This document shows positions 37,401 through 55,972 of a stretch of DNA of 64,000 nucleotides, in pieces. Positions within the stretch are counted from its first letter, which is position 1; every line of letters starts with the position of its first letter. The translations under genes and the position numbers were made by a program. The notes below the pieces were generated by a model that saw only the letters and a list, made by a program, of their open reading frames with translations, ran no database searches and had not been told where the DNA came from. Source of the stretch: Salpingoeca rosetta (Eukaryota; Protista; Choanoflagellata); assembly GCA_033442325.1 (NCBI GenBank), contig JAWQFM010000012.1, positions 1 through 64,000 of the forward strand. Direction: 5' to 3'.

Positions 37401-40400
37401 TTGTGTGTGCATGTGTGTGTGTGTGTGTGTGGTTGTGTGTGCATGTGTGTGTGCGCGTGACAGTGCGATCGCATCTTCTCGCGGTTCTACTGCTCCGCCC
37501 TGGACGGGTGCCGCTACGATCCGTACACATACCGCTGCGTGGAGGTGCGCTCTCTTTCTCCATCATGTGTGCGCGCGCGTGACCTGATGAGTTTTCATCG
37601 CCGCCGCGTGCTTTCCTTGTCACAGTTGCACATGCTCACGTCGCCATCGCCACCGTCGCCACCATTGCTGCCGTTTACATGTTTGTACATGCAGGAGTCG
37701 TCCATCACGGACTGTGAGGATCTGCCAAACGAAAGCATCTGTACACTGGTGCGTATGCACCTGCCAACCAACACCACGGCCATGCATCACAGCCATGCAT
37801 TCGTTTCTTGACACATCCCGTGGTTTACCCGTCCGCTGCTGTTGTTGCCACCGTTGTCGCTTGTTTCGGTTGGTCCACTGCAGGCAAACACACGGGACAA
37901 TCGCACATCGGCCTGTGTCTGGGACGCAGACTATGGCGTCTGTTTCACAGAAGGCAACCCACTTCCATGCAAGGCATTCAAGAATGAGGTTCGAAACGCT
38001 TCGTGTGCGTGCGTGCGTGCGTGTGCGTGATTGCGCGTTCGTGCGTGATTGTATACATGCGCATGCGTGATTGCGTTGTGCGTGCGTGCACCACACCTGT
38101 GCACACCACACCTGCGCGCATTCCCTGTTGCACTCAGCGACGTTGTGCTCATGACTGCTCTTCCCCCTCCTCCCCCAAACAAAACACACATGCATGTTCC
38201 CGCGTGTCAAGACGGCATGCAACCTGCTGCCGTACTGTGAGTTCAACGTCGTGTGCCAGGACTACGTGACCACGACCACCACGACCACTACTACCACCAC
38301 CGCCTACATCAACGCCTGCGACCGCCGCCCCTGCGCTACGAGTATGTGACACCTCATGCCACTGTTCACATCCTCCTGTACCCATGCCCTGCTTACGCGT
38401 TTGCGTGTGTATGTGTGTGTGTGCGTTTCTCATCTGGTGTCGCCGTTACACTCACTGTCATCGTTGTGTCGTGATTTGCAGATGTTGAGTGCACGCCGCT
38501 TGAGGAGTCCAACACGTACGAGTGCGGCGATTGCCCGTTGGGATATGAGGGCGATGGACGCACTTGCACACGTGAGTACAAGTGCATCTCCACTTCCACA
38601 CCCTTTTTTTTTTTTACGTGCTTAAGCAACCGTATTCATTGGCTCAACCTTCCCCAATTTATTTGCCACCACTGTACCCCCCCCCCCTCTTTCGTACTTC
38701 TCACACGCTCATGCACCCAACACACACACACACACAGTTGTGACGTGCCCCTCGCAGCTGTCGCTTGGCGTCGGTGCAGAGTATGCGTTCGCCGACAAAT
38801 GCTTCTTCACTAACTACGGTACGATGAGGATAATGGCCATTTAGAACAGTTATTCATGCCGTGTGTATTGTCCAAGTACCTGTGTTGTGTTGCTCCTTAC
38901 AATGCAATCGTGTACGTTGGTGCCTGCTCTTGTTCTCCAGGCGACGACTGCAATGCGCGCTGCGACTCAAACTACGAGCAGATTGGGGATGGCGTGTTCA
39001 TCTGCAGCGCCAACGGGACTTGGATAGGCAACCTCACCTGCAATGGTGTGTGTGTGTGTGTGTTTGTCGCTCTCCGACAGAGCTTTCATCATTTGTGATT
39101 GCTGAATAGATCAGCTATGATTTTGTTTTATTGCCCTCTTTGCTCCTCACCACATCCACGTCACATCCACACTCCACTGCATCCACGCCACATCCACAGA
39201 GATTGACCGGTGCATGGACGACCCACCGCCGTGCGATCCGCTCACGACGTGCACCAAGGTTGCCTCCAACTCGTTCACCTGCACCTCCTGCCCCACGGGC
39301 TACAGGAACGTCGCCTTCCGCCCAAAGACAAAGTGCATGAACATCAACGAGTGCGAGGAGCAGCACCCGTGCCACCCGCGCCGCAACTGCACAGACACAA
39401 TGGGCAGCTTTGAGTGCGGCAAGTGCGAGCCCGGTTGGCGCGAAGTGAACGACCGCGAGTGCGAAGACATCAGGGAGTGCACGGAGCTTGAGCCGTGCTA
39501 CCCGGGGGTCAAGTGCACGGAGACCGACGGCAGCTTCGCGTGCGGCAAGTGCCCCACGGGATACACGGGCACGGGCGTGGGGCCAGACGGGTGCGAGATT
39601 GTCCGCTGCCCCTTGGATGACGTGCCGTCGTATGAGAACGCGGACGTCGACTGCGCGGGTAACGTGTTTGACAGCACGTGCACTGCCACGTGCAAGGAGG
39701 GCTACTCGAACAGCGAGGCCACCATCCAATGCAAGGCGGACGGGCAGTGGACCACGCCCTCGCTCACGTGCTCCAAGCTGCCGTGTGCCAACCAACCAGA
39801 CGCGTCGTTGCTGCCCATTGGCGTCGTCAACCCGCAGTGTGCCGGCCGCCATCAGTGCACGCTCGAATGCAAGGCCGGGTACCGCGGCGAAGGAAACCCC
39901 TCCCTCACCTGTCCGACCACCGCGTGGGTGGGCGACACGGAGAACCCGTTCACGTGCGTCCCCTGCGACGCGGGCTCCACGTACCAGAACACGCCCGGCT
40001 CAACCACGTGCCTGCCGGTGTCGCCGCCGTGTGGGGAGGGCGAGTACGAGTCTGCGGCCCCAACGACGTCCACAAACCGCCGCTGCCGCGCTGTGAAGGA
40101 CACGTGCAGGGAAGACTTTGAGTACTCGACGCAGGACCCGACACCAACGTCCGACCGCGTGTGCAGCACGTGCACGGCGTGTCCCGTTGGCCAGTACCGC
40201 AGCGGGGGCTGTGATGGGCTCTTTGATGCACAGTGCGCGGCCTGCTCCACCTGCGGCGGCTTCTCGTACGAGCTGCTGGCGTGCACACAGCTGGCCGACA
40301 CCACGTGCGCCACGTGCCCATTCGGCACCTTCTACTCCCGGGCCAGCAGCAGGTGCCAGGACCAACCCTACTGCTTCGTCGGCCAGATTGAGGCCGTGTC

Positions 40401-41876
40401 GCCAACGCCCCTGCGCAAGCGCAATTGCACGCGTGTTCGCATCGACACACCGCCACCGCCCGGCACCGTTGCGCGCGTGTACACCATCACGCTGACAGGC
40501 ATCGACGGCACGCTGCCGCTCGATGTGGGCGTGCTGCTTGTGGAGTCTGTGCGCCGCGTGTTTGTGTGGGCGGACGTGGACGTGCGCGTGGGCATCCTGA
40601 GCGTTAACGTCGGCACCAACGCCCGCCGCCGCCGGTCGCTCGAGTCGGAGGTGGTAGTTCGCGTGGAGGCGAGCGAGGACGATGCGTCTGCGGTGGACGG
40701 GACGGACGTGTCTGCACAGTCGTTGCGTGCAGCCATCAGCGCCGTCGCCAGCGATACGCAGGGGGACTCGAGCGTGTCGCGTGCGCTTCGTGAGGCCGCA
40801 GCTGCCCTGCTGGAGTTGGAGCCGGAGAGCGTGGGGGCGAGCAACGTGCAGCCGTCGTCTACTGCTGGGACAACCAACCAGCAGTCGACAACAAACAGCG
40901 CCGCCACCACCGATCCGCAGTCGAGCCAGAGCGGGTCAGTCAGTGCACATGTTGGCTTTGTCTGTTTTGTAATGTGTGTGTGTGTATGTTTGTGTTGTGT
41001 GTATGTTTGTGTTGTGTGTATGTTTGTGTTGTGCGTGTATTTGTGTTGTGTGTATGTTTGTGTTGTGCGTGTATTTGTGTTGTGTGTATATTTGTGTTTT
41101 GTGGGTTGTATGCGTGCGTGCGGGAGTGCCAGGTGTGTTTATTGCGTGTTGCTCACCAAGACACTATTGTTGTTGCTGTTCTTCGTCGCCAATGTTTTTC
41201 GTCCATGCAGTGGCACTGACAACACGACGCTGTACATCATCATTGGGTCTGTTGGGGGCGTTGTGCTTCTTGTCGTCGTGATTGCGGTCGTGGTGACGTG
41301 TCGCACGAGTGGACGGTCAAAGGGAGCTTCCATCTCTGGTGCCGGTGGCGCCGTCGCCTCCCCTTACCAGGAGAACAACTACTCAAAGTGCGTTTTGTTT
41401 GTTTGTTTGTGTGTTTGTTTGTTTGTTGGTTTGTTGGCTGGTTGGTTGGTTTGTTTGTGTGTTTGTTTGTTGGTTGGTTTGTTGGTTGGTTTGTTGGCTG
41501 GTTTGTTTGTTTGTTTGTTTGTTTGTTTGTTTGTTTGTTTGTTTGTTTGTTTGTTGGCTGGTTTGTTTGTTTGTTTGTTTGTGTGAATGTTCGTGTGTAT
41601 GTCGTCGCATGTGTTCCAGCTTTGCGGTTGCCATGAATGGCGCTTGTTATGCTTTCATTGATGCGCATGTAGTCTTCCTCCTCGCCCTGCTCCCTACTCA
41701 CTCACCAACAATCACACCCCACAACCAATCCAAACTCCAAACACACGTGTTGTAGTGTGCATGAGTTGATGGCGATGAAGACGCTGGAGACGACAGCGCG
41801 GGCGCCGGTGGCCACACGCGCAACGCGGCAGGGATCCTTCTACAGCTCCATCACCCAGGCTGCATCGGAGATCTGA
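29558..41876 (+). CDS. Giant Cys-rich type I receptor: many short Cys repeats, Thr stalk, EGF/EGF-Ca, CCP, TNFR/GCC-like, SEA-like with RRRRS, TM, short tail ending ASEI
   Basis: Signal [14 protein letters not shown]. More than 25 small Cys-rich exons. Large exon ~39200-40933 ([24 protein letters not shown]). [24 protein letters not shown]. Last exon 41756-41876. Confidence 0.7.
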
Positions 41877-45922: not shown

Positions 45923-48900
45923 ATGCTGGTGCAGGTGGTGACAGCCGTGGTTTTGGCCGTGTGCGCCATTTCCACGACGCTCACCTCGGCCGCTGCGCCA
46001 TGCACACCCGCACCGTGCGTGACCTATGACGCGAGCGGCACGCTCATTGGTGGTGAATCGACGCTCACCATCGAGTGGAACGTCGAAGCAGGCCTTCCAA
46101 ACATCTTCATTATCCTGGGCAGCTTGGACCAAGACGGCGCCACTTTGCAGCTGTTCCTCTCGGGCGAGGTTGTTCTCAACCATACCCTCGCCAGCCCAGC
46201 CACCACTGGCTCTTACAACTGGGATATCCCGTACATCGCAGAGGACAACTTGCAAATCCTGCTGCAGATTGCACCAGACAACACCAGGGCCAGCTCCTTT
46301 GTCAGCGGCGACACCTTCTCCACTGAATGTGAGTCGGATCGACGTCAAAGACGTGTGTGAATGTGTGTGTGTGTGCGTGTGTGTGCGTGCGTGGCAGAGT
46401 AAAGGTCACGTGTTGCATCTTTCAGTAACGTGCACGCACGTCCGCACAGCATTTGACTTGCCTCTCACCATCCTCGTCCCGGTCTTCCAACTCTCTGCTG
46501 CTGGCAGTTCCACCATTCGCCGTTACAAGTCCGCGTGCGTACTCGTTCTTGATCCCTGGCGAAGATGTAACTATCAAATGGCAGGTATGCACCCGGTGGT
46601 ATCTTCACGCTGTTACATGTCACCAGTGCGGCTCGCCTAGCGCGCTATCTCTCTCTCTCTCTCGTTTCATGCCTGGCATTTGTCTCCTCTCACCCACCAC
46701 TGACGAAAGCACTCTCTCCTCAAACCTTGAACACGTGTATTCTGATGCCTTGACAGAACTTTGATGGGAATGATGTGAAGATTCAATTGGTGTTTCGCAC
46801 GTCCGAGGGCGATCTTGCGTACCCCTACTCATTATTTGGGGATGAAAGCACGCCAAATTCTGGATCTGCTACATACACGGTCCCTTCAATCGCCAACGAC
46901 TATCCTCAACCACTTCTGTACACGCACAACATCTATGTGAAAGAAGTCGACGGCGGAACGGACGACTTCTTCCTCGGACCCCTCTTCGTTCCAGGTGTGT
47001 GGATCACGAAGCTTCACGCATGACTTGATGCTATCACTGGCAGCTGCCTCCATGCAAGTGTAGTTAAACTCCTCTTGTTATAATCATCGCCTGACGCTGC
47101 TTGCTATTGCGCCTGCAGCCGTCGGATATAGTTTTGCAGGATCGGTCGGCACCACTGGTCGTGCAGTTCAAGGAACCAACATTACCGTGGCCTATACCAT
47201 CGTCAACTTTGCCGATGAGGAGGTTGCCGTCACTATCAGCAATGCAACGTCGGGCACTATTCGACTGGGTGCACTGCCAAACAATTTCGCATTTAATGAC
47301 TCTTCACACGTCGCAACACCTTTCTCGGCATCAGCGACAATCATTGTATGTGCACTCCGCAATGCCTTTGCCTTTTGCTCGATTCCCTGCCGCCGCTGTC
47401 AACCGCATGTGAGCACCTTAAAGATCCCCGCACCTGTCATTCACACACACACACACACATACCAACACACACCAACACACACCAACACACACACACACAC
47501 ACACACACCAACACACACACACACCAACACACACACACACACACACACACTCACATACCAACACCAGATTGAGCCTGGGGAGCCGCTTGGAACTGTGACG
47601 GTTCGGCTGTATGTGGAGCGGATGCCAGCCATCTCGGCGTCGCGCCAGATCACGGTGTTGCCGCCCTGTGAGCCGGGCACCTTCTACAACGACACAGACG
47701 TGACGTGCAACGCGTGCCCTCCCGACACGTTCACAGACACCATCAACCAGGACGCATGCCAGCCACACTCGACGTGCCCTGATGGCTGGGTTGTGGCCGC
47801 AGCCGGCACCAGCACCGCAGACACCCTGTGCGTCGACCCTGCCATCACCCTGCCCATCAGAATGGCAGCTGCAGCACCACCCGGTCTCCTCTTTGCAGCC
47901 TCACCCTCAGACACGACCTCCGTCAGCGACAACACGACAGTCACGTCGCGCTCGCTGCTCACAGTCGCTGCGCGTGATTCTCCCGTGTCCATCCACTCAG
48001 CGCTCGGCAACAAGCAGGCAACAGCCTCCATCACAGGCACCGCCATCACAGCAACTGCACCAACAGCCACGCGCGTACGTGCTGTGCTGCTGGGCGAGCC
48101 CGGCCTTTCCCACAGCCGCCAGCCATCGCAGCCCGCAGTCGTGCTGCCCGACGAGACGGCGGTGAAGGTGCTGCTGTTTGCACTCGATGGCCGCGGCCTC
48201 GCCATGCAAGATGCAGAGTGCCACGTGCGCATTCAGGACAACGCACAGCAGCTAACGGCCGTCACAGCCGTGTGCACCACGTCCTCATCGTCACCCACGC
48301 CGTCGTGCACAGCAACGCTGGCGCTGCCTTCCTCCTACTTCACGGCCGTGCACCAGCTCACGCTGACCGCCGGTCCAAACGCAACAGCAGCAGCAGAAGA
48401 AACAGCAGACGTAGCAGCCACGTTGCAGACAGCACAGCGCGTGGCGCGACCCGAACCCCTCACTGGTGATGTGTTGGCCGTGTTCCCACAGCGACCACTG
48501 CCACGATCCAAGACCTTCACGCTCACCGTCTCTGCACATGGCGGTGCACGACCACTCAGCTCGTGGCAGCTGCGTGTCACATCTCCAGACGCCAACACTC
48601 TGCAGGTCCAGTCCGTCACGGGCGGCAGTGGATGGACGGTGACTGCATCGTCGCTGCCCTCGCGTGATGTTGCTGTGCTTGGCGTTCGCGCCATCGAGCA
48701 GGGTGGTGGCGGTGGTGCTGGTGCTGAGGAGAGTGTGCTGTTCACGGCAGATGTGCTGGTCGGTGCAATGGCTGCGCGCGACGTCGTGTTGAACGTCAGT
48801 GTTGTGGAGGCGTTTGATTCGAGCGGACAGCCAGTCCTCTCGGGCACGGCGCCGCTGGTTGTCGCCAGCAGCAACCCCAACCCAACTGCACACCGCACCT

Positions 48901-51900
48901 CCACTGTCTCGCTGACGACCTATAATGAAGCCGACGTCGTTGCACTCCACGCGTTCCCATCGATGCGCACGGCTGGTGCACCGCCCACAACCGCCCCGCT
49001 CTCCAACGTCCTGCTCAACACGGCCGCCCTCAACCCAGACAACGCAGCACTGCAGCACCCGTTGACTGTCAGCGCGTACAGCGCCAGCGGCAGTGGCACC
49101 ACACTATCACCGTCGACGTCGCTCGTGTGCTCCTCAAGTGCACCAGAGGCGCTGCAAGTTGATGCCAGCTGCGGGTATGTGCACTTCACTGGTGCTGAGA
49201 CAGCCGGCAGCGACAGTGCACAGGTGGTGGTCCAGCACGCCACGCTGCCTCTCAACACGACGCTCAGATACAAGGTGTGGCACCCAGCCGCATTTCGCAT
49301 TGCTATCGACGTACAGGGCAGCAGCAGCGGCAGTGACGTGGTGCTGCGGCGTATTGGTGGCACGGCGTTGTACCAGCATGTCGGATACACGATTGAGGCA
49401 GACTGGTCATCCGCAACGGCAATGACAAGTGGCGGCGCTGATGATTGGTTGAACAGCACGGATGTGACCGAAGAGGTGTGGCCGTTGCTGCAGGGGCAAC
49501 ACGTGGGCGGTGGCAGTGGTGATGGGAATGTGATTGTCACACCTTTGTCAATCACAACCAACACATCTGGCACGTTCAGGCTGTGCATTTCGCATCCGCT
49601 GCGCACACCGTCGTGTCTCGGTGCGCGAGACATTGAAGCGACAGACAGCGAACCAGCAACACCCGTGGCCATTTCCGCCACCGTCGTTGCATCTGTCACT
49701 GCTGCGACCACCACATCAAGTGCCGATACCTACACCCGCGTGTCATCATCCTTCACGTCTGTGCTGACAGCAGACCAGCAGAGCGCATCCGTCGTCGTCC
49801 ACGCCATCTTCAGCGACGGCAGCACCCGAGTCCTCGACCCCGCACTGCACAACACCACCGTCACCACCGGCAGCCCAGCGCTCATTGCTACCAACATTAA
49901 CGCTGCGAGCAGCAACAGCCACCCCTTCGTGACGACGCTTGGCGGTGGATCTGTTGCCGTGGGCCTCACATGGTACGTGTCTGACACCACGACTGTGCAC
50001 GGTACCGTGGACGTGGTGAGCGCCCTTCCCGCTGTGACCGGTGTGCGCGTTGCAGGGCTTCCAGCAGCAATGGCGCCGTCCACAGACGTGAGTTCGCAGC
50101 TGCCGGCGAACCTGGCATCATCAACCCTGGTTTCGGTCTTCCTGCAGTATGACGATGGCACGGAGATTGACTTTACAACAGACGCGCGCACGAACATCGC
50201 GACAGAGGGAAACATCACTGCAACGGTCGATGGCACGCGCTTGCGTGTGGCTGTTGCGGATGGCAGCACGGAAGGGCAGGCGCGGCTGCTGGTGTCGTTT
50301 GAGCACACGGGCGTGACGGCGTCATTGGCTGTCGAGGTTGTGGTCGCCACTGGACTGCGGGTTGCGCTCCGGCCCTTCCCGGCCTTTCCTGGATCCGAGG
50401 ACGAAGAAGTGGCGGAGGTGCGGCGATTGGGCGCGTCCAACACGTGGCAGCAGGCGATGGTCGATGTCAGTGCAGTGTTGTCGTCCGGAGAAGTTGTGTC
50501 GGGGAACGACCACGCAGAGCTGATGGTTTCCACGCCCGCATTCTTCAACTACAACAGCAACACGCGCCTCGTCTCACCAACGCCGCAGCTGCCCGGTGAC
50601 GAAGGGATGGCCGTGGTAGTGGCGACGCTGCGTGACCTCTTCAACACCACCGCCGTCACCGTCTCCTCGCTCGCCTGGGGTGTGGCCAGCATCACACCTG
50701 TCCTGCCGGCAACAACGCTCGCTGGAACCGTCAACACCAAGCAGCAGATGCGGGCGAGCGTGGTGATGGAGAACGGGCTCACGCTCACGACCACTTACCT
50801 CTTCCCAAACGGCGGCGCGCTCGCCCTGCCCAACCTCATCACGTTCGATATCACCACGCCCACGGCGACAGATGCCGTTGTCATCGACAGCGCAACGGGA
50901 ACAGCGACGCTGACAGGCAACTCGCGCACACAAGAGACGCTGGCGGTGTATGCGGGAGACAATGCTGACGTGAACGCCACGGCACTCTTCTATGTGAATT
51001 TGGTGCCCACAAACTACGATGTGGACTTAGGCGCCACGCAGCAGCTGCCGCTCGCACCCGTGACAGGCGGCGACACCGTTGCGATCTCTGTGCGCGTGCG
51101 ACTGCCGAGCACCCTGGCGTTTGCCTCCATCTCCCTGCAGGTCACCTTTGATGACGCTGTGCTTGAGTTTGTGGATGTGGCAGAAGGGAGCGACTGGCCT
51201 GGCGGCGAGTTTGCAGGCGGATTGGACGGCAGCGGTCGCATCTCGTTTGGTGGATCAACGGCTGGTGTTGGGCCAGGCACCCTGACCCTGTTTGAGGTGA
51301 CGCTGCGGGTCAAGGGTGGTGCAGGTGCTGGATTCTCGTCCGTCAGCGGCACAGCGGTGACGATTGCCGATGGGGACGGCACGCTGTTGGCGAGCGATGT
51401 CCCATTTGTTGCAGGCGACGTCACCCTCGAGATCACCGCACCTGCGCGTCGTCGTCGTAGTCATCAAAGCGCCAGCGCCACCAGCACTACTGTCGCGCGT
51501 GCATTCGGGTTCAGCAGCACCACAGCCAGCCGTGCACGTCGCGCGGAGTGTGGCTCGCCGCCTTGCGCTGTGTGCATGGACCAGCGGCAGATTGGTGACG
51601 CGGATGGCAACTGCTTGTTTGACGTGCGTGACGTGACTTTTCTGAAACGGTTCCTGAATGAGCGGCTGCTTGATCCAGATGGCGCGTTTGTGTCCGCGGT
51701 TCAGGCGTTTCAAATGCCGGACATGGACGCCGACGGCAACACGATCATCAACACCGTCGACGTCAACTTCCTCCTGCGCGCCAACTTTGGTCTGTTTGCA
51801 CTCGTGCGGAGCGTGAACATGACAGCGCCAGACACGGACCCGTCCCTCGCCGTCAGTGTCGAGCAGACAGAGTGTTCTGTCGCCGTGTACGTGCAGACGA

Positions 51901-53593
51901 TCAGCGGTGGCGACGGCAGGGAGCAGGTGCCCTCCGACCCACAGCGCACGGCCGTGTTTGTGTACCTGGACAGCCCCAACGTTACGCTGCACAACAACGC
52001 GCAGCTGGTGGTGACGGATGGCGAGGTGGTGGTCGCTGATGTGGCCACAAACCAGCGTGGCGTGTTCATCAAGGCGGCCCACGACCCAGCACGCGATGCG
52101 TTCTTCGTTGCTGCGTCGTCTGAGCTGCCGTCCGACCTCGTGCTCACGGGTGTGCCGCTGCTCATCAGCATTGATGCCGCTGGCGAAACCAACGCCGACC
52201 GCGCAACCGCCGCCCTCACGTACAGCGATGCGCCCGTGAGCATTGCCGGCGAGCAGCGGGTGGCGTTCACGTTCCTCGGCCAAGGGTTTGAGCTCGTGCT
52301 GAACGACTACGGGCCGAGGGTGTGGGTGTCGACGACAACGGTGAGCCGCAACTGCCGCGAGCAGCTGATGTGCGATGACGAGGCGGGCGAGTACGTGGCT
52401 GTAAACGCGACGACAACGGACAACCCGGTGTGCCGCGCGCTCACAACGTGCGTCCTTGGCGACTCTTACGAGACGCGCGCCCCAACGCAGTTCTCTGATC
52501 GGGTGTGCGCCAACACGACGGTGTGCACACCGGGGCAGGAGTACATCTCTGTGCTGCCGACGCTCGTGTCGGACCGGCGGTGCAGCAACATCTCGGCCCC
52601 GTGCACGAGCACGCAGTTTGAGGCCATGGCGCCAACGAACACGAGCGATCGCGTGTGCACCAACACAACGGTGTGTGACCTGAGCACGCAGTACATTGTG
52701 ACAGACGCCACGCTCAGCAGCAACCGCGTGTGTGCCAACATCAGCGACGCGTGCGTGTTCCCGCTGCAGTTTGAAATCCAGGCGCCGACCAACACCAGTG
52801 ACCGTGCGTGCGTGACAACGCTCGTGTGCACGGCGAGCCAATACGAGACCGTTGCGCCTACACCAACCAGCAATCGCGAATGCACTGACTTGCACACGTG
52901 CAACCTTGACGAGTATGCGATTGTCCCCCCGACACCAACCACCAACCGCGTGTGTGAGCTGGCGACGGTGTGTGATGACACGGAGTTTGAGTCTGTTGAG
53001 CTGACGCCAACCAGTGATCGCCAGTGCATGCTGAACCCCTGTAACGTCTCCACCATCTGTCTTCCCGAAGGATCGTGCATCCCAACGGCCACAGGACCGT
53101 ACTGTGACTGTCCACCGGGCATCGACTGCGGTGGGTTTGTTGTCATGTGAAATAACCAGGAGGAAGAGGAAGTGTGTGTATGTGATTGTGTGTGTATGTG
53201 ATATTGTGTGTGTATGTGATTGTGTGTGTGTATGTGATTGTGTGTGTGTGTGTTCATGTGTGCGTGTGATATCTGCTTGCGAGCTCTCTGTCTTGTTTTG
53301 TTTCTCTGGTCAATGAGGCAACGTGTGTATCCCAGACATGTGCTGACGCTGGCTCATATTGGCCCACATCTGCATGTGTGTACCACAGGCCCAACCCAGC
53401 CGCCCACGACGGATGCCTGTGCTGCTACCGTGTGTAGCGATGAGGGGATGTGTGTGTCCACCTCCTCGGGCGCATTCTGTGTATGCCCGGACAGCGCGCC
53501 AAACTGCGGTTCGTATGCGATTGTCGCACCTCACGTTTTCCCCCTCATTCCAAGTGCTCTACCATTCATGCTCATGCAATGCACGCACGGGCG

Positions 53594-53632
<39 letters not shown>

Positions 53633-55972
53633 TTACAACACACACACACACACGCACACACCCTTTACGTACCTCGCACACGCACACGCACGCACGCACA
53701 CACACACGCACACACACACACATTTACATCACACACACACACACTCACGTTGACAACACACACATATACATCGCACATACATATTTTATCAACACACCCT
53801 TTATCTCTGCAGGACCAACGACGGCTGCGCCGGACCTGAACCAGAGCTCGGATTCGTCCGTTGACGCGTCGCTGGTAGCCATCGCCACATCCTGCAGCTT
53901 TGTTGGCCTGCTGCTCGTGCTCGGGTTGGTGTATGCCAGCCGGTTCATCACGTGTGACCGCCGCAAATCGAAGCAGCCCGCCTCCGTGGGTGGTGTGCAG
54001 GTCTTTGAGCAGGAAGGGTTTGAGATGAACCTTGATGACAGCATCAGCGACGGCGATGGCGACAACAGCCGCGCGCGCCTGGACAGGCAGGTCTCTGTCC
54101 GCACACGCGAGAGCGTGGAGACGTTCAAGCCGCTGACACTCGGACGCATGGACAGCTTTGAGGAAACGCCATTTGAGGCGCAGGCGACGTTCGAAGGGGG
54201 TCCCGAGGATGGCGGGTACAGCGCACTGCCACACCAGCGGCTGACAGCCAACCCAGCATACGAGGAAACCGGCGAGCAAGCCAAGTCAAATTTCTACGAG
54301 GACGTGGGTCCTGCCGAGGGCAGCGGCAGCGGCGGCGGCGGTGGATATCAGGAGGTGCCACGCCAGCGGCTGACGGCCAACCCGGCATATGAGACAGTGA
54401 AGCAGCGGCCTGTCAGCATGGAGAACCAGTACAGCGACGTTGGGGCCGGCCATTACGACGTGCCGCACGTGAAACCGGCAAAGGAGACGGCGGAGGGGTA
54501 CGATCTTCCGCGCAAGACGCCGCGGTGGAGCGAGAACCAATATGAGGACATCAGCGCTGCGCCGAGCAGGCAGACGAAGGAAGGCGACTACGACAGGCCG
54601 CACCAGCCGAGCGAGGGCCAATATGCGTCCGTGTCGGGCGGTGCTGCGCGCAATGACGGGGACTATGACCGCAAGCCGTACATGCCCAATGCTGTTCTCT
54701 ACGATGAACTGCCGGGGAAATCACGCCGCAACTCCGTCGTGGCAGACGTCCCCGAAGGTTCTGCTCCAAAGGTTAGTTGGTTTTTGATCGGCTGGTTGAT
54801 GGTGTGTGTGTGTGTGGGTGTGTGTGTGTGCATGTGTGTGTGTTGGGGGGGGGGAGAGGGTGTGTGTGTGTGTGTGGGGGGGAGGGAGAGGGTGTGTGTG
54901 TGTGTGTGGGTGTGGGTGTGTGTGGGTGTGTGTGTGGGTGTGTTGGTGTGTGCCTTTGGCTAGCGTGGTGGCTGCCGTGTGCATCGCATCGTACCCTGAC
55001 GTAACCCTTTTCGTTGTGCCTGTCGCCACCACAGCGGCGCCGCAGCACGCGTGTGCTGAAACTGTCGGAGGATGTGCTGCGCGATCCGGAGCGCGACGTC
55101 TTCTTCGTCAAGGCGACGGCCAAGAACAAACAGTCCTACGGCGGCTCCAAGCGCGTGTACAAGGCAATGCGCTTCCAAGGTGCGACTTCAATGGAGGGTG
55201 ACTTATTGTGTGTGTGTGTGCGTGTGTGTGTAGTAATTGGCGCACCTTAATGCGCACAACTCTGAACACTTTTGTTCGTGCATACGGGCTTCCATTCACT
55301 TGCTGCCATGTTCCGACCATCGACACTCGTGATGCTCTCTCTTGGTCTCTTCAGGTGCTGCCAATGAGGCGTTTGTAATGCCTGAGGATGAAGACGTGGA
55401 TGGCGACGACGCAGATCAGCAGCAGCGCCCGGCGTACTTTGATCCCAAAGCAACACGTGATGAGAAGCCAGCGTACTTTGATCCCAAAGCCACACGTGAC
55501 GAGAAGCTAGCGTACTTTGACCCCAAAGCCACACGTGATGAGAAGCCAGCGTACTTTGATCCGGTATCAGCACCACCTAATCCAGACTACGCTTCGCCAA
55601 GCGCCGTCACACCCGGTTATGAATACGGCAGCCTGATCCAAGGTGAGCTAGCAGTTCAGTGAAACAGTGTGTGCGTATTTGTATGTGTGTGTTTTTGTGT
55701 GCGTGTGTATAGATGTGTGTCTCCATGCGTGTGTCCATGTGTGCGAACGATGTGTGCTGACGACTTCATTCCCCACCACTGGCGCAGGGCCGCCTGGTGC
55801 CGAGTATGCGAGCGTGCCGGCGCACGATGAGGGCGAGTACATGGAGCTCTCGCGTGAGGATTTGCTCGCAAACCCAATGTACGCCTCCTTTGCGGACTTG
55901 GAGGAGACCACGCACGCAGATGACGCCAACGCAGAGAGCTACCTCACCATTGTTCCCAGCAAGGACGAGTGA
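45923..55972 (+). CDS. TMEM132-like giant receptor with cohesin, dockerin, TNFR-like repeats, EGF, TM and a Tyr-motif-rich tail
   Basis: Signal peptide. 5.6-kb exon ~47568-53133. LLNTAAL...[24 protein letters not shown]...KVWHP...YQH resembles TMEM132. Cohesin-like ~51070-51436, dockerin-like ~51591-51791. [24 protein letters not shown]. Stop at 55970-55972. Confidence 0.75.
55429..55563 (+). repeat. 39-bp coding tandem repeat, ([13 protein letters not shown])x3.5
   Basis: Directly visible in DNA and translation. Confidence 0.95.

Follow-up and report, generated by a model that had tools for sequence, protein, structure and literature searches.

A receptor gene of the choanoflagellate Salpingoeca rosetta, situated on the + strand at 45923..55100 of a 64,000-nucleotide stretch of its genome (the window, to which all position numbers refer), encodes a cassette made of a cohesin, a dockerin and, between them, a spacer bracketed by two basic sites. 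Our delimitation of the gene, whose 3′ end is unmapped, combines tblastn of the paralogue PTSG_01972, translation, RNA sequencing (RNA-seq) joints and a transcript contig. The cassette lies inside an open frame of 1987 codons (47187-53150, +). Upstream of it, translation and tblastn with PTSG_01972 locate an ATG followed by a signal peptide at 45923, and tblastn with the same protein places four short + strand exons at approx. 46-47 kb (45923-46327, 46510-46584, 46754-46999 and 47118-47348). They are followed on the same strand by the expressed main exon of 5.5 kb, which carries the cassette (approx. 47583-53130), and by downstream exons at 53389-53508, 53813-54771 and 55035 onwards, defined by RNA-seq joints. 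Stranded RNA-seq reads cover 50900-53129 continuously with zero joints, and the joints downstream delimit introns at 53131-53388, 53509-53812 and 54772-55034, all of them GT..AG; a 7937-nucleotide transcript contig shows identical splice joins and contains the cassette. Given this coverage and these splice joins, the cassette is expressed and physically linked to the membrane anchor and a Tyr-rich tail. A preliminary description of this DNA had proposed a receptor with a phosphotyrosine tail, and the RNA reads do join the cassette exon to the transmembrane segment and the Tyr-rich tail.

The whole cassette (50979..52328, +), of ~430-450 residues, comprises a cohesin, a predicted cleavable spacer, a dockerin and a beta domain, and is matched end to end by a 15-paralogue profile; residue and column numbers below follow the numbering of this unit, and all its parts are on the + strand. 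Near its start lies the motif N-L-x-P-x(3)-D-x-D-x-G (50997..51032), whose columns N7, L8, P10, D14, D16 and G18 are invariant or near-invariant, and whose predicted local distance difference test (pLDDT) score is 96-98. Though ahead of the Pfam cohesin core, this motif is conserved to the level of the Ca loops, and may provide a further Ca site or contribute to the interface with the dockerin. The cohesin domain (51069..51443) is a nine-strand beta sandwich without Cys in this copy, delimited by Pfam PF00963, the profile and Foldseek/VIA. It is followed by site 1, RRRR (51447..51458), by a low-complexity, unconserved spacer of 24 residues that is predicted from pLDDT and the paralogue alignment to be disordered (51459..51530), and by site 2, RARR (R-X-R-R; 51531..51542), whose R185, R187 and R188 do not vary among 15 S. 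rosetta units; at both sites a convertase is predicted to cut after the last R, and the spacer is predicted to be excised. A Cys knot (51546..51614), made of C-x4-C-x2-C and a Cys at position 6 of Ca loop 1 and identified by alignment and column co-occurrence, caps the N-terminus of the dockerin. The dockerin itself (51594..51791; Pfam, paralogue profile, pLDDT 92-98) contains two F-hand Ca loops of 12 residues (51597-51632 and 51726-51761), each entering a helix. The cassette ends in a beta-rich domain of ~170 residues (51792..52328), defined by the profile match and by strands predicted by AlphaFold2 (AF2) with pLDDT 55-85. This domain belongs to the conserved unit, being covered by the profile match in nearly all database matches. 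A Pfam search assigned it to no family and an Atlas feature search returned only weak matches to unrelated bacterial clusters, suggesting that it may be a new family.

The cohesin assignment rests on agreement between sequence and predicted structure. PF00963 matches at E 2.5e-10 (41.1 bits, above the gathering cut-off of 24.1), the paralogue profile matches solved cohesins at E 1.3e-8, and the AF2 model (pLDDT ~95) superposes on the type I cohesin 5nrk_A with Z 15.7 and a root-mean-square deviation of 2.1 A over 132 residues. In Foldseek and VIA the 15 best structural matches are all cohesins, 2xdh being among the structural matches; since cohesins fill both match lists, these bear on the cohesin fold and not on the dockerin fold. 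A further structural match, to a 'CLIPPER domain', was rejected, as it concerns isopeptide adhesins and is irrelevant to the cassette.

For the dockerin, PF00404 gives this copy 14.4 bits against a cut-off of 22.9 (E 0.045), spanning profile positions 2-52 of 57. Among the aligned units, 8 of 15 score E < 0.1, the best at E 1.5e-6, and the gathering threshold is exceeded by four units elsewhere in the genome. The paralogue profile matches dockerins of solved structure in the PDB, namely 4dh2_B (1.6e-7), 4fl4_A (4.4e-6) and 1ohz_B (1.2e-5, over its full length). Both Ca loops carry D/N at positions 1, 3, 5, 9 and 12 and lead into an amphipathic helix, and in the aligned units the D of loop positions 1 and 12 is invariant or nearly so. 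The helices of the AF2 model (unit residues 216-231 and 259-269, pLDDT 92-98) start at loop position 10, as in an F-hand. In the six frames of the 64-kb window, the pattern D-x-[DN]-x-[DN]-x3-[DN]-x2-D occurs exactly twice, both times in the dockerin. Across 197 units from 141 clusters, the family sample used for all statistics below, the Cys of knot columns 200 and 213 are both present in 160, both missing in 23 and discordant in 14, which suggests a disulfide between them. The preliminary description had called both domains and had named PF00963 and PF00404 as the profiles to search with HMMER: the cohesin call is borne out above threshold, with a fold matching type I cohesins, whereas the dockerin of this copy falls below threshold and owes its assignment to its loops, to the scores of its paralogues and to the profile matches to solved dockerins. 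All peptides quoted in that description are present in the long frame at the places given, including RRRRS at 51447-51461 and RARR at 51531-51542; only its start of the cohesin, 51070, was one base off codon phase, the domain beginning at 51069.

A scan of the genome (55.4 Mb, 68 contigs) with the Pfam cohesin and dockerin models shows that each cohesin is followed by a dockerin 200-300 nucleotides downstream on the same strand. Profile A1, built from 15 S. rosetta units and 435 positions long, gives 25 matches in the genome, equivalent to about 23 units in about 16 genes; a survey for further cohesin-RRRR-dockerin proteins had been envisaged in the preliminary description. All 16 Pfam cohesin matches and every credible dockerin match fall within these ~23 units, and neither the Pfam nor the A1 scan found a stand-alone cohesin or dockerin in the S. 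rosetta genome. Searched against 1.84 billion representative proteins, A1 matched 422 clusters below 1e-30, and nearly all of the best 150 of these 422 clusters were matched over A1 positions ~3-433. These near-full-length matches identify the conserved unit as cohesin, spacer, dockerin and ~170-residue beta domain together. Its named carriers include the choanoflagellates Hartaetosiga gracilis and Barroeca monosierra, the sponge Sycon ciliatum and the haptophyte Prymnesium parvum. Elsewhere in S. rosetta, single frames of 6000-7500 codons hold two or three cassettes (G000:C7:2027048-2038150, C6:1969371-1980488 and C4:1897432-1905837); if all their units were cut, one such precursor would yield a chain of clasp-joined segments. 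A contig of 820 kb in ENA ERZ25071859 encodes giant eukaryotic cadherin-repeat proteins with TMEM132, cohesin and dockerin matches, and the linker of these giants has no basic sites, an uncleaved variant of the cassette.

The two basic sites are far better conserved than the sequence they enclose. The 15 aligned S. rosetta units are 22-33% identical to this copy; RRRR follows the cohesin in 14 of them and R-x-R-R precedes the dockerin in all 15, while their spacers, of 9-50 residues and all in frame and free of stops, have nothing in common. In the family, columns 161-164 of site 1 are K/R in 69, 71, 72 and 50% of units, and columns 190, 191, 192 and 193 of site 2 are basic in 73, 9, 80 and 83%, that is R / any / [RK] / R; read from the sequence, site 2 is thus in the furin/kexin consensus register with a free P3. 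Over the family sample both sites agree with R-X-K/R-R, and dibasic motifs stand at the two of them in 150 of the 197 units. The 6083 linker residues contain R-X-[KR]-R 224 times and the 76677 other residues 5 times, an enrichment of ~560-fold, and the density of dibasic pairs in the linker (9.2 per 100 residues) is 76 times that elsewhere in the unit (0.12). The 1987-residue frame contains exactly two R-X-[KR]-R motifs, both in the linker, and in the 15 S. rosetta frames (~1100 residues each) the motif is confined to the linker. Compared with the near-identical paralogue, the spacer differs at 4 of 24 residues, the cohesin at 0 of 155 and the dockerin at 1 of 94, both sites being unchanged. 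The sites are also kept in Hartaetosiga and in the sponge Sycon (RRRR and R-H-R-R in the latter).

The setting of the sites suits a convertase substrate of the secretory pathway. AF2 models give the spacer a pLDDT of about 50 or less, so that the R-X-[KR]-R motifs lie in a segment of this low confidence within a protein that has a signal peptide and a transmembrane helix, and the genome encodes convertases with S8 and P-domains on contigs C1 and C9, of which one also has a Cys-rich region like that of furin. The R-X-[KR]-R register, the enrichment, the depletion of dibasic pairs elsewhere and the position of the sites around a disordered, unconserved spacer together form a convertase-processing signature. 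We infer that both ends of a disposable connecting peptide are processed by a convertase, and the two predicted cuts would excise this peptide. The reading of RRRR(S) and RARR as convertase-type motifs, already made in the preliminary description, is strengthened by finding them as conserved sites around an unconserved, disordered spacer.

We employed AF2 to predict how the two domains are arranged once the chain has folded. The 450-residue unit, modelled with 15 sequences, reached a predicted template modelling (pTM) score of 0.74 with the spacer below pLDDT 50, and the cohesin-spacer-dockerin segment (282 residues, 124 sequences) gave a mean pLDDT of 91.4 and a pTM of 0.86 in five out of five models, low confidence being restricted to residues ~160-189. 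Because the pTM reaches 0.86 although a disordered spacer is the sole covalent link, the contact between the domains appears confident, and the models place the dockerin against the cohesin of the same chain. A two-chain prediction (cohesin, 2 Ca and dockerin) scored 0.56, 0.49 and 0.62 as against 0.37 for one unrelated control, a margin too small to be used for or against binding. When the didomain model was compared by shape with the ESM Atlas, parts of the cohesin alone were matched (one row with a TM score of 0.54 over residues 11-282), which gave no independent confirmation of the didomain packing. Pairing in cis is independently supported by the obligate co-occurrence of the domains in one chain and by family members in which a short linker carries no basic site. 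Comparative and modelling evidence thus support an obligate cis pair of cohesin and dockerin.

Around the cassette, the protein has the build of a receptor. A TMEM132-type Ig domain, the 4th, is found at 49005..49289 (+; Pfam PF16070, E 8.5e-18, 64.5 bits); it is the significant one by Pfam, the 6th being sub-threshold and the remainder uncalled, and its presence points to a TMEM132/coherin-like architecture for the N-terminal part of the ectodomain. Pfam also detects TNFR-like repeats upstream of the cassette. Downstream, membrane-proximal Cys-rich repeats (52329..53130, +) are TNFR-like in 4 stretches (TNFR_c6, 28.4 bits, cut-off 29.4) and pass into EGF-like pieces, which continue in the product of the RNA-defined splicing ahead of the transmembrane helix. 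This helix (53872..53949, +) consists of 26 hydrophobic residues in the spliced frame, and the cytoplasmic tail that follows (53950..54771, +; spliced translation) contains 14 Tyr, some of them in two NPxY motifs and in several motifs of the type Y-[ED]-[DE]-[VI], from which its phosphorylation may be expected.

Among database proteins the closest is S. rosetta PTSG_01972, with 91% identity; it seems to be a paralogue encoded on another contig, and its signal peptide differs. A near-identical copy of the cassette at G000:C5:1865546-1866895 (-), corresponding to 50979-52328 of the window, is probably PTSG_01972. RNA reads that carry the paralogue's variants at 51569-51599 suggest that both paralogues are expressed. 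The introns of the receptor gene are rich in repeats of the (CA)n/(GT)n type (47400-47580, 53158-53264, 53588-53756 and 54790-54952), which translate as THTH.../CVCV.... A neighbouring open frame of 790 codons (39214-41586, +) has weak TNFR-like Cys repeats and a transmembrane-like segment, and the last third of the receptor matches it weakly in tblastn (29% identity); this frame may encode a further receptor of the Cys-repeat type.

Together, these observations make it reasonably probable that the cassette is cut and yet held together, the pair docking in cis, the spacer being excised and the receptor persisting as two chains in non-covalent contact. In the endoplasmic reticulum, where Ca is plentiful, the dockerin would fold and dock on the cohesin of the same chain, as the AF2 models and the obligate pairing suggest, with the flexible spacer acting as a tether that would ensure 1:1 pairing in cis. 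Judging from motif conservation, a convertase of the furin/kexin type in the late secretory pathway would then cut behind each of RRRR and RARR, and the unconserved spacer would be discarded like a connecting peptide. The products would be an N-terminal subunit of ~1600 residues, with TNFR-like repeats, TMEM132-type Ig domains and the cohesin, and a C-terminal subunit with the dockerin, the beta domain, the Cys-rich repeats, the transmembrane helix and the Tyr-rich tail. The surface receptor would thus be two chains joined solely by a Ca-dependent cohesin-dockerin contact; in this copy they would be held non-covalently only, because the cohesin side has no Cys. We speculate that such a joint could work as a fuse, sensitive to force or to Ca, with the tail relaying the signal. 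The fuller proposal, a pre-metazoan releasable joint in which tension on the N-terminal subunit or falling Ca frees the dockerin stub and switches on the Tyr-rich tail, and in which multi-unit giants become segments clasped end to end, seems to us improbable as it stands.

Several observations weigh against a cut-and-held pair. The dockerin of this copy scores under its Pfam threshold, and the pTM is an indirect readout of the interface on which the modelled docking depends. As many as 18 of the 197 units (9%) have no dibasic site at all and 61 have no strict furin motif, so that cleavage is not universal to the cassette; the basic clusters could also have another role, such as polyanion binding. 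Finally, in about half of the units the N-terminus of the cohesin carries a Cys (column 8, V in this copy) with no upstream partner, and a lone Cys stands in the beta domain after the dockerin (column 291) in 88% of units. A disulfide between the two may act as a staple that covalently links the chains in those units; no covariation of columns 8 and 291 was seen across the units, and the staple is plausible by elimination only.

The same exceptions lend something to the view of the cassette as a rigid structural module, whose basic motifs either stay uncut (contacting polyanions or glycans, for example) or are cut with shedding of the ectodomain, the cohesin-dockerin pair serving folding or stalk rigidity. 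Units without a dibasic site keep the whole cassette, half of the units have the possible staple, and the continued attachment of the fragments is a prediction. We nevertheless find such a module rather unlikely, since the register with its free P3, the concentration of R-X-[KR]-R and of dibasic pairs in the linker and their placement around a disordered spacer bear the marks of convertase processing, and mere shedding would not require a dockerin at the new N-terminus in every unit. We are more sceptical still of assembly in trans, in which the freed cohesin and dockerin would pair between molecules or cells, by swapping among paralogues or daisy-chaining of the giants, into a cellulosome-like network or an adhesive bond. 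Cellulosomal pairs do work in trans, and about 16 genes with about 23 units, some of them giants with 2-3 units, provide many potential partners; however, no protein has only a cohesin or only a dockerin, the fixed order and the short tether favour cis, AF2 confidently packs both domains of one predicted chain, and the domains of members with short, site-free linkers must pair in cis or remain unbound. An annotation artefact, with an intronic spacer or a fortuitous frame that would rob the motifs of meaning, has next to no chance of being right: low complexity and lack of conservation would fit it, but spacers are in frame and stop-free in 15 of 15 units and also occur in proteins deduced from the transcriptomes of other species. 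For this copy an intron was rejected directly, as the stranded reads run through 50900-53129 without a joint and the spliced 7.9-kb transcript contig contains the spacer.

The preliminary description had inferred that, after cleavage, the large ectodomain stays clipped to the membrane stub by cohesin and dockerin, and this is partly supported: its domain calls hold, its polybasic motifs prove to be conserved sites of convertase type, AF2 packs the two domains as a cis pair, and the linkage to the transmembrane segment and tail is confirmed. It did not extend to the spread of the cassette across the genome and between phyla, to a second predicted cut that would release a connecting peptide, or to the conserved beta domain behind the dockerin. 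Its alternative of a dock for swapping ectodomains is less supported, the genome containing no stand-alone cohesin or dockerin to serve as partner.

Cohesin-dockerin pairing is textbook bacterial extracellular glue, among the most force-resistant non-covalent bonds known, and eukaryotic cohesins have been noted since 2008 as a puzzle. Two kinds of assembly to which the S. rosetta cassette can be compared are already known, cohesin-dockerin pairs and convertase-processed heterodimeric receptors, and the cassette is a variant of both. It shares its two folds and its Ca-loop signature with cellulosomal type I pairs such as the C. thermocellum CipA cohesin and Xyn10B dockerin (1OHZ). Unlike these, its modules always lie in one eukaryotic polypeptide, in fixed order, with a predicted cleavable spacer and with a conserved beta domain after them; its dockerin is capped by a Cys knot at the N-terminus and has its loops spaced more widely, with 43 residues from one loop start to the next, and there is no context of carbohydrate-active enzymes. 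Non-cellulosomal proteins with both modules also show a likeness, the Archaeoglobus fulgidus cohesin 2XDH matching structurally and bacterial clusters with cohesin and dockerin appearing in the Atlas search. To our knowledge, convertase sites, an excised spacer or a receptor context are not known from such non-cellulosomal proteins, which are reportedly treated in a review by Peer et al. of 2009.

Cohesin domains in choanoflagellate and sponge proteins, including cadherins, have been described by Sanchez-Pulido and Ponting 2017 (PMC6030884), who found dockerin homologues undetectable in vertebrates. The receptor resembles the TMEM132 and coherin-lefftyrin-hedgling architecture in its TMEM132 Ig domain, and cadherin-type giants with matches to TMEM132, cohesin and dockerin belong to the family; PMC6030884, however, describes neither a cohesin-adjacent dockerin nor cleavage sites. 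By inference the cassette is also like the Notch S1/heterodimerisation domain, the GAIN domain of adhesion GPCRs and SEA, in which the ectodomain is cut in the secretory pathway and kept by a non-covalent, Ca- or force-sensitive contact; their folds are unrelated, and the cassette differs in having two predicted cuts that would remove a connecting peptide. Pfam found no LNR/HD, GAIN or SEA domain in the 1987-residue frame, and the resemblance is functional only. On the proposed reading proinsulin is comparable as well: its C-peptide, a variable connecting peptide between conserved basic sites, tethers the chains during folding and is then excised, but insulin chains are held by disulfides whereas this copy has no Cys on its cohesin side. 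Full-text literature searches found no paper that combines a eukaryotic cohesin-dockerin pair with convertase sites.

A self-contained cis clasp of bacterial type, with convertase sites, appears to have been built into surface receptors and adhesion proteins in the nearest kin of animals, a sponge and a haptophyte, here between a TMEM132-like ectodomain and a TNFR-like stalk with a Tyr-motif tail. The small module, of about 280 residues, lends itself to direct tests and may be of interest for mechanobiology and protein engineering. If the two chains are indeed cut in the Golgi and stay attached at the surface, this solution would have arisen in evolution separately from the Notch, GAIN and SEA domains. 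It would also give eukaryotic cohesins a concrete role. The less probable releasable joint would, in addition, represent a mechanosensing principle like that of Notch and adhesion GPCRs, made from a bacterial clasp.

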